NCBI GenBank assembly: GCA_000320545.1
Contig: ADNK01000255.1
Span: 55,480-119,479 of the forward strand
Direction of reading: 5' to 3'
DNA: 64,000 bases
Source: Bigelowiella natans CCMP2755
Lineage: Eukaryota; Protista; Cercozoa
Numbering within the stretch: the stretch's first letter is position 1; every line of letters begins with the position of its first letter. The position numbers were made by a program, and so were the translations under genes. Under the pieces are notes generated by a model. The model worked only from the letters and a program-made list of their open reading frames with translations. It had not been told where the DNA came from and did not search any database. Below, piece after piece: positions 26,909-49,310 of this stretch.

Positions 26909-28724
26909 GGATTTAGAGAGCGGTGGCTAGACTGCCATACATATGCGAACTTAAAAAAACAACATCCAGTCATATCAAGTCTTCGGCGGCTACTGTTACT
27001 TAGATCTCGACCGTCGGCAATATATATTTTTCCACATTAAAAGTAGTACATAGTGGTACAATCCAGTCTTCTGTAAAAATGAATCATTTTATTCAATTAT
27101 AAAAGCAAATATGAGCAGGAAATAACATAAATCATGGACAGCTTGATAGTTGTGCATACGTCTACACTAAACTACATTGTTACTACATCGATGAAGAACC
27201 CAGTAAGGAGCTGTCTTCTTAGAATGTAAGTTTTGAAGCATTTAATTTAAATCAAAGATTATGTAATTCGTACAGCTGAAACATATATGCTCTGATTCCT
27301 CATATGTCAATGTTAAACATCATACTCACATGTGTGTACATGTGATGCATGCAGCTACGCGGATTAAAACATGATCCTAATGGCTATGCATGTGCGATGA
27401 ACTGTAGAATATTGCGCGGACACGTACGTGTGGTAAAATTGTCAACATCACATGCGCAGTTGTTCTAGCTACGATGCGCATCTGGGCCATGTACAGTGTA
27501 AGACGGATGTAATAATGAATTATAGAATCAATTAAATTTGTTCAATGTGGTAGTCATCCTCATGTAGCTAGCTAGCTAGCTGTGCAATGCAGCGGCTACA
27601 GCGTGTGCACGCTATCTGCAATGCTGTCGCTTGTACTTGTGCTAGCAGTTCACAGGTGTTGCTAGGCTTGCACGTGTAGACATTTTTGTGCGAATATTGA
27701 TCATGGATCAATGCATGCATCTACATTGCATTCGGCGTATAGCGTGCACACGTACTGTTGTGCATCATCTAATGACCAAATTTGTGCATTTGGCGTTCTA
27801 CTAGTGTAGCTAGCTAGCATACTAGCTAGATAGCTAGATCGAGTGTGTTGAGTCCGTGCATTTGTATATTTGTTTGCGTGCATGAAGGCAATGCAATGCG
27901 ATGAAAGTACACAATCCATGTGCAAGCAGAAATGGCTCTGATGTATTGACTACGCTAGCACAGAGTGCAACGTGCACTGCAGAGCCAACGTGTGTGACAC
28001 AGTGACACAGCTACTGTGCTTAGCTAGTTATAGTTAGTGCGCCAAGTTGCATTGCGACAGGACCGCTGTGTACAGTGCGGGCTAGCAGGGCATCGCTGTG
28101 TAGATCTGTCCGCAACAATGTCGTCCGCATGAGATTGTGTGCACTGATGGACTGTGTCCATGTGCATCAGGATACATGCACAAGCAGCAAAATGTCATTT
28201 GCCAATTTTTTTTGGTTCAGGTGGTGCATTCTGGAATTGACCACTGCATGTGGGCGAGAACATGAACCAAAATGCAATGCACTAAACAGGGTTCATTTGA
28301 TCGTCAACTTTGCGCTGCATTCTTGCGTCATCACGGTGGACACACATGATGTGCATGCCTACAGACTTGTGTGCCTAGTGCCTGCGTGTGCGCCAATGCG
28401 ATTGTCGATGTCCGTGCGAGATGCGATGCGATCGACACGCCCACGCACACAGACGCATGTCCACATCGACGCTAGTGAGGATCTGTTCAAGATCAGAGAT
28501 GTGCCCAGTAGAAGATTGCCTCATTGGGGATTCAACAGGAACAGGTGAACAATGCCGAGAGCTAGCATAGAGAAGACATTAGATCCCATGAAAGTCGAAG
28601 GGGTTCAATCCCATGAAAAGATCCAAAAACACCCTGAAACCCACTAGAGCAGATAACAATAAGCTGCACATGATGAGCACAACGCATTAGTTGTGATACA
28701 CATTACATGTGTAGCGACGATGAC

Positions 28725-28730
28725 AAAAAA
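28725..28730 (-). terminator. T6 run directly after the last tRNA of cassette A (Pol III-type terminator)
   Basis: Minus strand reads ...GTGCCCCC TTTTTT. It is the only run of 4 or more T in the cassette's transcribed strand. Confidence 0.7.
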
Positions 28731-28801
28731 GGGGGCACCGTGGAATCGAACCACGGTCTCTACCGTCCAAAGGTAGGATACTACCACTATACTAGTGCCC
28801 C
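28731..28801 (-). tRNA. trnP-UGG: tRNA-Pro(UGG), atypical (A37), cassette A
   Basis: GGGGCAC TA GTAT AGTGGTA GTAT C CTACC TT TGG AC GGTAG AGAC CGTGG TTCGATT CCACG GTGCCCC C; full cloverleaf. Confidence 0.88.
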
Positions 28802-28816
28802 TATCGAGCTATCGAG

Positions 28817-28890
28817 CGCCACCGTTCGGATTTGAACCGAAATCTTTGCCCTTACAAGGGGCATGCTCTTGCCAATTAAGCTACAATGGC
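28817..28890 (-). tRNA. trnT-UGU: tRNA-Thr(UGU), cassette A
   Basis: GCCATTG TA GCTT..GAGC A TGCCC CT TGT AA GGGCA AAGAT TTCGG TTCAAAT CCGAA CGGTGGC G. Confidence 0.9.
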
Positions 28891-28895
28891 GTATG

Positions 28896-28969
28896 AAGAA
28901 ACGATAGGACTCGAACCTATAACCTTCGGGATTGTAATCCGATGCTCTGACCAATTGAGCTACATTTCC
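28896..28969 (-). tRNA. tRNA with ACA anticodon (nominally Cys), U73, A31.C39 mismatch, cassette A
   Basis: GGAAATG TA GCTC AATTGGTCA GAGC A TCGGA TT ACA AT CCCGA AGGTT ATAGG TTCGAGT CCTAT CGTTTCT T. Confidence 0.75.
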
Positions 28970-28976
28970 GAACAGA

Positions 28977-29047
28977 GGGGGCACCGTGGAATCGAACCAC
29001 GGTCTCTACCATCCTAAGGTAGGATACTACCACTATACTAGTGCCCC
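28977..29047 (-). tRNA. trnP-AGG: tRNA-Pro(AGG), atypical (A37), cassette A
   Basis: Same body as Pro(UGG); anticodon loop TT AGG AT. Confidence 0.88.
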
Positions 29048-29050
29048 ATC

Positions 29051-29123
29051 TTGCGATGAATGGATTCGAACCATTAACCTTCGGGATATGAGCCCGACGC
29101 GCTTCCAATTGCGCCACATCGCA
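29051..29123 (-). tRNA. trnM-CAU: Initiator-like tRNA-Met(CAU) of bacterial/organellar style, cassette A
   Basis: TGCGATG TG GCGC AATTGGAA GCGC G TCGGG CT CAT AT CCCGA AGGTT AATGG TTCGAAT CCATT CATCGCA A. Has three G-C pairs in the anticodon stem, U1-A72 and a TTC T-loop. Confidence 0.9.
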
Positions 29124-29285
29124 CTGAATCGTGTTTCTCTTGCAAAGTGTGGAGCTTTCTCCGCACTCCCATCCCTCACTCTGGAAGCGTGAAAGCTTCC
29201 TCACGCATGGAGTATGAGTTTCCCAGAAAGTTCAAGGATCAAACTTAGAATGGACTGAGTTGCGACAACCTTTATCCATGTCGCA
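29124..29285 (-). promoter_or_regulatory. Conserved 5' leader/upstream element of tRNA cassette A (homologous to 48416-48576)
   Basis: Shared hairpin GTGTGGAG-CTTT-CTCCGCAC (29147-29166), a 37-nt box (29207-29243) identical at 36/37 to 48498-48534, and a CGACAACCTTT..ATGTCGCA element. Confidence 0.65.
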
Positions 29286-29504
29286 ATGAATTTAAGGCCT
29301 GTGATGCATTCCGATAGATCTACGAGTAATATTCACGATTGCAATGGATCGAACGTAGGCCATTCACAGGGTGAAATGACGGAATGATGTTGTCGCAGAG
29401 CAAAATTAGAGTAAGAAAAAAGCAGGAGATTTAAGAGCACACCAAACGCTTCCTGGAAGTTTCATCTGGGGCACAGGGGGGGTTGGGGAACCCTCCTGTT
29501 TATT

Positions 29505-47775: not shown

Positions 47776-47780
47776 AAAAA
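47776..47780 (-). terminator. T5 run directly after the last tRNA of cassette B
   Basis: Minus strand reads ...GTGCCCCC TTTTT GTCA, the same context as cassette A. Confidence 0.7.
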
Positions 47781-47851
47781 GGGGGCACCGTGGAATCGAA
47801 CCACGGTCTCTACCGTCCAAAGGTAGGATACTACCACTATACTAGTGCCCC
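47781..47851 (-). tRNA. trnP-UGG: tRNA-Pro(UGG), A37, cassette B
   Basis: Identical to 28731-28801. Confidence 0.88.
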
Positions 47852-47858
47852 TATTGAG

Positions 47859-47932
47859 AGCCACCGTTCGGATTTGAACCGAAATCTTTGCCCTTACGAG
47901 GGGCATGCTCTTGCCAATTAAGCTACAATGGC
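47859..47932 (-). tRNA. trnT-CGU: tRNA-Thr(CGU), cassette B
   Basis: Same body as the cassette A Thr, but the loop is CT CGT AA and the discriminator is U73. Confidence 0.9.
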
Positions 47933-47937
47933 GCATG

Positions 47938-48011
47938 AGGAAACGATAGGACTCGAACCTATAACCTTCGGGATTGTAATCCGATGCTCTGACCAATTGA
48001 GCCACATTTCC
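47938..48011 (-). tRNA. tRNA with ACA anticodon (nominally Cys), cassette B
   Basis: GGAAATG TG GCTC AATTGGTCA GAGC A TCGGA TT ACA AT CCCGA AGGTT ATAGG TTCGAGT CCTAT CGTTTCC T. Confidence 0.75.
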
Positions 48012-48018
48012 GAACAGA

Positions 48019-48089
48019 GGGGGCACCGTGGAATCGAACCACGGTCTCTACCATCCTAAGGTAGGATACTACCACTATACTAGTGCCCC
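48019..48089 (-). tRNA. trnP-AGG: tRNA-Pro(AGG), A37, cassette B
   Basis: Identical to 28977-29047. Confidence 0.88.
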
Positions 48090-48095
48090 ATCTTG

Positions 48096-48139
48096 CGAGA
48101 ACGGCAGGACTTGAACTTACAATCTCGTGCTACGTTCTC
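48096..48139 (-). pseudogene. Armless tRNA-like unit: acceptor stem plus T-arm, D and anticodon arms missing
   Basis: GAGAACG TA GC ACGAGATT GTAAG TTCAAGT CCTGC CGTTCTC G; perfect 7-bp acceptor stem. Confidence 0.7.
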
Positions 48140-48144
48140 TGATG

Positions 48145-48229
48145 AGATAGTGACAGGATTTGAACCTGCTAGGGCTGAGCCCCCACCGGTGTTCTAAGCC
48201 GGGCTGCATACCAAATGCAGTTCACTACC
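48145..48229 (-). tRNA. trnS-AGA: Class II tRNA-Ser(AGA), atypical
   Basis: GGTAGTG AA CTGCAT TTGGT ATGCAG C CCGGC TT AGA AC ACCGG, long variable arm, GCAGG TTCAAAT CCTGT CACTATC T. Has A8, a 6-bp D-stem, C31.A39 mismatch and U73. Confidence 0.72.
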
Positions 48230-48245
48230 GGAATGGTGTTAGCTG

Positions 48246-48317
48246 CGACTCTACTCGGATTTGAACCGAGGTCTCCCCGTAGACAGCGGGGTATCCATAC
48301 CACTGGACCATAGAGCC
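48246..48317 (-). tRNA. trnD-GUC: tRNA-Asp(GUC), atypical U37
   Basis: GGCTCTA TG GTCC AGTGGTAT GGAT A CCCCG CT GTC TA CGGGG AGAC CTCGG TTCAAAT CCGAG TAGAGTC G (G73). Confidence 0.87.
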
Positions 48318-48342
48318 AAGGGAGGCTTGAGCTTTTAGCTCA

Positions 48343-48415
48343 TTGCGATGAATGGATTCGAACCATTAACCTTCGGGATATGAGCCCGACGCGCTTCCGA
48401 TTGTGCCACATCGCA
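48343..48415 (-). tRNA. trnM-CAU: Initiator-like tRNA-Met(CAU), bacterial/organellar style, cassette B
   Basis: Differs from the cassette A copy by two D-arm substitutions, one creating a D-stem mismatch. Confidence 0.85.
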
Positions 48416-48576
48416 CTGAATCGTGCTTCTCTTGCACTTCTCTTGCACAGTGTGGAGCTTTCTCCGCACTCTCACCCCTCGTCCGGACGCTCCTCGGATG
48501 GAGTATGAGTTTCCCAGAAAGTTCGAGGATCAAAGTTTGGAGCTAGGCGTAACGACAACCTTTCGAGAATGTCGCA
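48416..48576 (-). promoter_or_regulatory. Conserved 5' leader/upstream element of tRNA cassette B
   Basis: Homologous to 29124-29285: hairpin at 48450-48469, 37-nt box at 48498-48534, local 11-nt duplication CTTCTCTTGCA. Confidence 0.65.
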
Positions 48577-49310
48577 CTTGTAAGAAGCAGGGACATGTCA
48601 AAGAAAATTTGTTTCTTCGACTCGAAGTGAGTCGTTGAGAAGGACGTGGTCATTGTCTACCTGCGACAAACATAGGAGGTTGTCGCAATTGCAAAATGGA
48701 TGGATCCTTCCCAGAACACACCTCAGCGGAAAGAAAGAAAGGTTTGGGTGCATCATCATTGGGCAGGCAAAAGGGAGAAGGTCAACCTGTTTATTAGATC
48801 CGAGTACTCGAGATAGGAACGACATACTTTCAAAAGGGAGAAAGAATTCTTAGAAAGGTAGAAATAGGGTCTAAAATAAGGTTGACTTGCAACCTTTCAG
48901 GAAGCATTCTGGCATTTTCTCAAACACCTTTTGAAAGATTTCGATATTCTCAGATAGGTAGAGTAGTTAAATTCAGAGGGAAAGAACATTGCATAGAGGC
49001 TGGTTTTAATGATCACGTGTACCTTTCCGAGGCAATAGAAAGCCCTCTGATTCAATATTGGACTCTTCCGAAGTGTCTTCAGACCGAAAGGGACAGATGA
49101 AGCGGATCATACATATTTGTGAAGCAATCACTGTCCCTTTTGGACAATTTCATGCTCATACGATCATAACGATACCAGCCATTTGAGAGGACTGGTCTTC
49201 TAATATTGTAATCCAGGAGATAACGGAATTTCGGAGGACTAGGTTATTTGGCGATATTTATAGTCACGTCGATTGTCTTCCAAGCCAGTGCTACCCCACA
49301 TTGAAAACCA

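Follow-up and report, generated by a model that had tools for sequence, protein, structure and literature searches.

In eukaryotes, adenosine at the wobble position of the anticodon (A34) is thought to be excluded from tRNAs that serve split codon boxes: once deaminated to inosine (I34), it would misread the A-ending codon of a two-codon box, which in the case of the cysteine box is UGA and would mean stop suppression (PMC5372738). The eukaryotic deaminase ADAT2/3 picks its tRNAs by shape and A34, independent of sequence (PMC9643335). Predicted genes with this anticodon in this codon box are already documented. The cow carries 157 Cys(ACA) genes beside 353 Cys(GCA) genes, for which the authors raise the same questions of expression and editing as arise here (PMC5372738), a tRNA-Cys-ACA is reported in Schistosoma japonicum (PMC2770079), and Cys(ACA), at 0.002% of tRNA genes, ranks with the rarest anticodons of bacteria (PMC13092985). 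The ACA gene of Bigelowiella natans analyzed here joins this already documented class of predicted "prohibited" Cys(ACA) genes. We read it, with a probability of roughly 0.6, as a tolerated mutant that is carried along, weak or inactive, in a duplicated tRNA array; the best explanation makes its product neither a code change nor a dedicated UGA reader.

The window, by which we mean the whole stretch of DNA that was analyzed (64,000 nt of contig ADNK01000255.1), is intron-rich eukaryotic nuclear DNA with abundant microsatellites. Exon-sized pieces match kinesin motor, PROPPIN, DHHC palmitoyltransferase, cNMP-binding, and PH domains in Pfam, and one ORF, encoding sedlin, is complete, its nearest non-self relatives being marine transcriptome sequences (71% identity) and an Amorphochlora amoebiformis entry (69%). 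ARAGORN identifies 12 tRNA genes in the window, every one on the minus strand and in two groups, here called cassettes A and B; neither a tRNA outside the two cassettes nor a Cys(GCA) gene was found by ARAGORN and Rfam within these 64,000 nt. The features of both cassettes are given below in their order from the leader to the terminal T-run.

28725-29290, minus strand: cassette A, with a conserved leader, five tRNA genes, and T6 (ARAGORN, sequence, alignment of A and B)
29124-29290, minus strand: leader, cassette A
29051-29123, minus strand: Met(CAT), cassette A
28977-29047, minus strand: Pro(AGG), cassette A
28896-28969, minus strand: ACA-anticodon tRNA gene, copy A (ARAGORN; Rfam, 64.4 bits; sequence)
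28817-28890, minus strand: Thr(TGT), cassette A
28731-28801, minus strand: Pro(TGG), cassette A
28725-28730, minus strand: T6 run, end of cassette A
47776-48580, minus strand: cassette B, with a leader, seven tRNA genes plus a remnant, and T5 (ARAGORN, sequence, alignment of A and B)
48416-48580, minus strand: leader, cassette B
48343-48415, minus strand: Met, cassette B
48246-48317, minus strand: Asp(GTC), cassette B
48144-48229, minus strand: Ser(AGA), cassette B
48094-48143, minus strand: dead tRNA remnant of 50 nt, cassette B (sequence; no ARAGORN or Rfam call)
48019-48089, minus strand: Pro(AGG), cassette B
47938-48011, minus strand: ACA-anticodon tRNA gene, copy B (ARAGORN; Rfam, 65.5 bits; alignment)
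47859-47932, minus strand: Thr(CGT), cassette B
47781-47851, minus strand: Pro(TGG), cassette B
47776-47780, minus strand: T5 run, end of cassette B

Both cassettes are organized as compact units. The gaps between their tRNAs are 3 to 15 nt, the A and B boxes are intact, and a single T-run terminator directly follows the last Pro gene of each; the T6 of cassette A is the only run of at least four T on the transcribed strand within 28650-29400. A common strand, short spacers, the lack of an internal T4, a terminal T-run, and A and B boxes are together the marks of a polycistronic Pol III-type unit, and the simplest reading is that each cassette would be transcribed as one Pol III-type precursor and cut into tRNAs. 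Given the leader, the A and B boxes, the short spacers, and the one T-run, the ACA gene is probably cotranscribed and excised with its neighbors. The leader upstream of Met consists of two well-conserved blocks around a segment of ~40 nt, which differs in sequence between A and B yet is palindromic in both. Tandem duplications are found in cassette B (11 nt) and in the Thr-Pro spacer of cassette A (8 nt; CTCGATAG).

The motif TGCGACAWY occurs 11 times in the window compared to 2.4 expected, a number that no shuffle attained. Its sites include 29261-29269, 29389-29397, 48568-48576, 48679-48687, 53797, 54484, 58457, and 58502. It is present in both orientations upstream of cassette A, on the transcribed strand together with an imperfect inverted copy upstream of cassette B, and also in two spacers that separate divergently oriented genes. 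It might serve as a general promoter element.

A viral, bacterial, or organellar source of the cassettes was considered and rejected. Exact-pattern scans of viral contigs and prokaryotic genomes returned no relatives of the tRNAs or of the cassettes, C73 of the Pro genes is the eukaryotic base, and A34 as found in Pro(AGG) and Ser(AGA) is of the eukaryote type, which argues against such an origin. Orthologous cassettes were not found in metagenomes either: one scan was empty, and the other gave 120 loci with only a D-arm word in common. A spurious ORF that runs through the cassette tRNAs has no match in the predicted-protein collection, and no recorded contig was found to encode the identical sedlin product.

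The ACA gene itself has the architecture of an intact tRNA. ARAGORN calls tRNA-Cys(aca) at 28895-28969 and 47937-48011 (both minus strand) in the 64,000-nt window, and the Rfam model RF00005, with a gathering score of 29, matches 28896-28969 and 47938-48011 on the same strand with 64.4 and 65.5 bits, so that the two genes rank second and fourth among the eleven Rfam tRNA matches in the window. Each copy is 74 nt long. Its acceptor stem of 7 bp has G1.U72 in copy A and G1:C72 in copy B, and U8 is followed by a D stem of 4 bp with a 9-nt D loop containing G18 G19. The anticodon arm is TCGGA/TTACAAT/CCCGA in both copies, the variable region measures 5 nt, and the T stem of 5 bp is closed by the T loop TTCGAGT. 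The score above the Rfam threshold, stems of 7/4/5/5 bp, and the complete set of invariants (U8, A14, G18 G19, U33, G53 T54 T55 C56, A58, and C61) are those of an elongator cloverleaf. The anticodon loop reads U32 U33 A34 C35 A36 A37 U38, the anticodon lying at 28935-28933 in copy A and 47977-47975 in copy B, and its center stays ACA whether the loop is counted as 7 or 9 nt.

The one blemish of the fold is in the anticodon stem, where A31 faces C39 (28938 and 28930 in copy A); this is the sole non-pair that cmscan flags in the ACA tRNA, and the pair 27:43 is an intact U:A. The sequence-only reading had described this loop, U73, and the A31.C39 mismatch, and the minus-strand sequence bears out all three in both copies. 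The arm is predicted to fold with -2.7 kcal/mol into a 4-bp stem and a 9-nt loop, compared to -5.4 kcal/mol for the Met anticodon arm and -5.2 to -6.5 kcal/mol for ACA variants in which 31:39 is paired. A34, the base on which ADAT2/3 acts, is carried by an arm whose predicted stem of 4 bp and loop of 9 nt result from A31.C39, and ACA lies outside the seven or eight isoacceptor families known for I34, in the Cys/stop/Trp box (PMC5372738).

With regard to the amino acid, the discriminator is T (U73) at 28896 and 47938, and neither gene encodes CCA. CysRS recognizes its tRNA mainly by U73 together with the GCA anticodon. The ACA gene has the Cys-type U73 and, in both copies, A34 C35 A36 instead of the Cys-type G34 C35 A36. 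Because C35, A36, and U73 are all there and inosine resembles G, any amino acid that the tRNA may receive is most likely to be cysteine. The base at 73, which had been taken for the Cys discriminator, is present as described and yet is not diagnostic, since U73 is also found in the cassette Ser(AGA) and in the Thr of cassette B.

This lack of specificity favors another ancestry, in which the body of the tRNA would come from a Met-like gene, from Arg(ACG) by G36-to-A, or from Trp(CCA), and its product would be uncharged, mischarged, or nontranslational. We consider such an origin improbable. The cassette Met gene is the closest sequence to the ACA gene in the window (70% identity), and the resemblance of their anticodon arms that had been pointed out earlier holds, in the form of an identical 13-nt stretch that begins at loop positions 37-38, takes in the 3' strand of the anticodon stem as well as the variable region, and ends with the first T-stem base; a G36-to-A change in Arg(ACG), for its part, would explain A34 without any unusual step. 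Derivation from the neighboring Met gene was nonetheless rejected: the loop would have to change three times or more to turn CAT into ACA, and the differences between the T stems are compensated, suggesting that the two genes are old paralogues and not a recent copy. Eukaryotic Arg and Trp tRNAs have G or A at position 73. Arg(ACG) and Trp(CCA), each a single step away from ACA, agree less well with U73, and the combination of U73, C35, and A36 points most simply to Cys.

Alignment of the two cassettes shows that they are homologous from the leader to the T-run, with unrelated flanks. Just two positions separate the ACA copies: position 9 is A in copy A and G in copy B, and position 72 is T in A and C in B, both structure-neutral changes. 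A34 and A31.C39 are common to the two copies within homologous cassettes and therefore predate the duplication, which makes them one ancestral event that was then duplicated and not two independent ones. Conservation of ACA in both cassettes, to which the sequence-only reading had pointed, is accordingly correct as an observation, while the two copies do not count as independent instances of it. The five shared tRNAs differ between A and B at 5 of 362 sites and the interspersed spacers plus 3' leader at 5 of 63 sites; the 5' leader differs at 23 to 34%, and the flanks are random. Taken together, the shared tRNAs have changed less than the spacers (Fisher p = 0.0085), so that selection or gene conversion acts on the tRNA block. 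The ACA gene alone (2/74) is more conserved than the fast-evolving leader (p = 0.0002) and is not significantly different from its adjacent spacers (2/74 versus 5/63, p = 0.25), and on these counts the case for constraint on the ACA gene in particular is weak. Transitions account for 9 of the 11 listed A/B differences.

The Asp-Ser-remnant block, which cassette A lacks, is bounded in B by two TCGCAA repeats, so that cassette A seems to have come from a B-like ancestor by deletion. The 3' end of the remnant (TCGCAA) is also the 3' end of Met, and this match likely marks the breakpoints of the deletion that would have yielded cassette A.

Other members of the cassettes show damage or odd features as well. 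The remnant keeps both acceptor strands and the T arm, has lost the D and anticodon arms by deletion, and has a T stem broken by two unpaired transitions. A purine is almost universal at tRNA position 37, and Asp(GTC) has U37, a pyrimidine adjoining the anticodon. Ser(AGA), which shows U73 and a C31.A39 mismatch and whose 6-bp D stem carries a short loop, scores 44.7 bits against the tRNA-Sec model, just below the gathering score of 47. The Met gene of cassette B has acquired an A12.C23 mismatch in its D stem after the duplication. In both cassettes, the Met tRNA combines initiator-like features (U1:A72, and an anticodon stem whose three lowest pairs are G:C) with an elongator-like T loop (T54 and T60). 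The Thr genes differ at the wobble base (28856 versus 47898), being TGT in A and CGT in B and hence different isoacceptors, and their discriminator is G in cassette A and U in cassette B. Uncompensated A.C oppositions thus recur: A12.C23 in the Met of B, C31.A39 in Ser(AGA), and A31.C39 in the ACA gene. Transitions in stems lead to G.U pairs or A.C mismatches, and a G34-to-A change in a GCA anticodon would be the same kind of event. The overall pattern suggests a redundant gene family under relaxed per-copy constraint, of which the ACA gene would be a weakened member.

A simple history can be proposed on this basis. The ACA anticodon would most simply derive from a Cys(GCA)-type gene with U73 by a G34-to-A transition, and A31.C39 would be a second transition-type defect. 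Both would have arisen once, in one member of a multi-tRNA unit, and been copied when the unit was duplicated. The gene may then persist as a passenger of little or no activity, its anticodon stem being in effect reduced to 4 bp with a 9-nt loop. The i6A37 modification needs an A36-A37-A38 context, and the ACA tRNA, which has U38, would lack the A38 required, in a family whose constraint appears relaxed. If the tRNA matures at all, ADAT2/3 would edit A34 to I34, the product could be charged with cysteine through U73, C35, A36, and a G-like I34, and it would then decode UGU and UGC, with inefficient I.A reading of UGA. Cysteine charging, I34 editing, and slight UGA read-through of a matured ACA tRNA are plausible but unsupported. 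A remodeled or inactive tRNA had already been offered as the alternative to a UGA reader, and with several cassette members damaged, it is the better fit of the two.

Several observations count against the passenger reading. The ACA gene is the second-highest-scoring cassette tRNA and keeps every invariant nucleotide, both substitutions since the duplication preserve structure, the spacers have diverged more than the tRNA block, and expression is likely because the gene would be cotranscribed with evidently useful Pro and Thr genes. The same facts, together with U73, C35, and A36 in an intact cloverleaf, the position inside an apparently single transcription unit, and the status of any A34 tRNA as cognate for ADAT2/3 (PMC9643335), would agree with a working minor Cys isoacceptor that reads UGU through A34, or UGU and UGC through I34, its background UGA read-through being tolerated. 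This possibility is the main rival, though we regard it as rather doubtful: A31.C39 weakens the anticodon arm, A38 is missing for i6A37, such a tRNA would be redundant with any normal Cys(GCA), neighboring cassette members are decaying, and the conservation of the ACA gene itself is not significant. A tolerated, weak or inactive mutant remains the reading that we prefer.

The proposal that attracted attention to this locus was that the ACA tRNA might read UGA. Its chemistry is sound, given that I34 can pair with A, that Cys tRNAs converted from A34 to I34 would suppress stops (PMC5372738), and that A34 is the feature ADAT2/3 looks for (PMC9643335). The window lends it no support: taking TGA as sense extends no recognizable exon among the handful of intron-split genes there. 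A comparison of ORF lengths across all stop-codon schemes showed neither a signal of a code change nor long ORFs in the window, and a change of the genetic code was rejected on these two grounds; the one complete gene in the window, that for sedlin, stops at TAG. A dedicated or regulated UGA-to-Cys reader, whose I34 form would place cysteine at UGA in the role of a natural suppressor or of a back-up at selenocysteine codons, is in our estimate very unlikely. Known short-stem UGA readers lose the pair 27:43 and not 31:39 (PMC13092985), so a mechanism of the Blastocrithidia type was rejected here, and an in-frame TGA aligned to Cys would be equally expected of selenoproteins. Furthermore, I.A is the weakest of the inosine pairs and must compete with eRF1. 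The full chain, from expression of the ACA tRNA through its deamination to ICA and its charging with cysteine, by which it would act as a genome-encoded, inosine-based UGA-to-Cys decoder, has in our judgment a very slim chance of being right. If true, it would be a route of UGA reading not yet described, and the decoder could be a natural suppressor that the cell tolerates or could supply cysteine in place of selenocysteine at UGA when selenium is scarce.

How, then, does this locus compare with the known systems? The Cys(ACA) genes of cow and S. japonicum share with it the anticodon and the codon box, are likewise high-scoring predictions, and presumably coexist with G34 genes. The gene described here differs from them in that it is not dispersed or repeat derived and lies inside a compact multi-tRNA unit, and in having the A31.C39 mismatch. 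Its transcription would be tied to that of useful neighbors, because the unit shares a leader and one terminator. The canonical I34 tRNAs (Thr, Ala, Pro, Ser, Leu, Ile, Val, and Arg), to which Pro(AGG) and Ser(AGA) of the present cassettes belong, also carry A34 in a standard cloverleaf; however, they serve four-codon boxes or the Ile box with its three codons, in which no harm comes from reading the A-ending codon, whereas in the split box of ACA that codon is UGA. Trp(CCA) of Blastocrithidia and Condylostoma and the UCA suppressors resemble the ACA tRNA in pairing an anticodon near-cognate to UGA with an effectively 4-bp stem, but it is the top pair 27:43 that is unpinned in Trp(CCA) (PMC13092985) and the loop-proximal pair 31:39 that is mismatched in the ACA tRNA.

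As for the array, the Arg-Asp dimers of yeast, the Ser-Met dimers of fission yeast, and the tRNA clusters of some algae, compared on the basis of general knowledge and PMC13578239, show the same spacers of a few nucleotides, single orientation, and single terminal T-run. The present units are distinguished from them by their five to seven tRNAs, a conserved leader of ~160 nt, and their dispersal as whole units. If the ACA gene proves silent or inactive, it would illustrate how redundant tRNA arrays carry damaged members. Because it is wired into an array with evidently useful Pro and Thr genes, this ACA gene makes a cleaner natural test case for A34 in a split codon box than the repeat-derived copies of large genomes.
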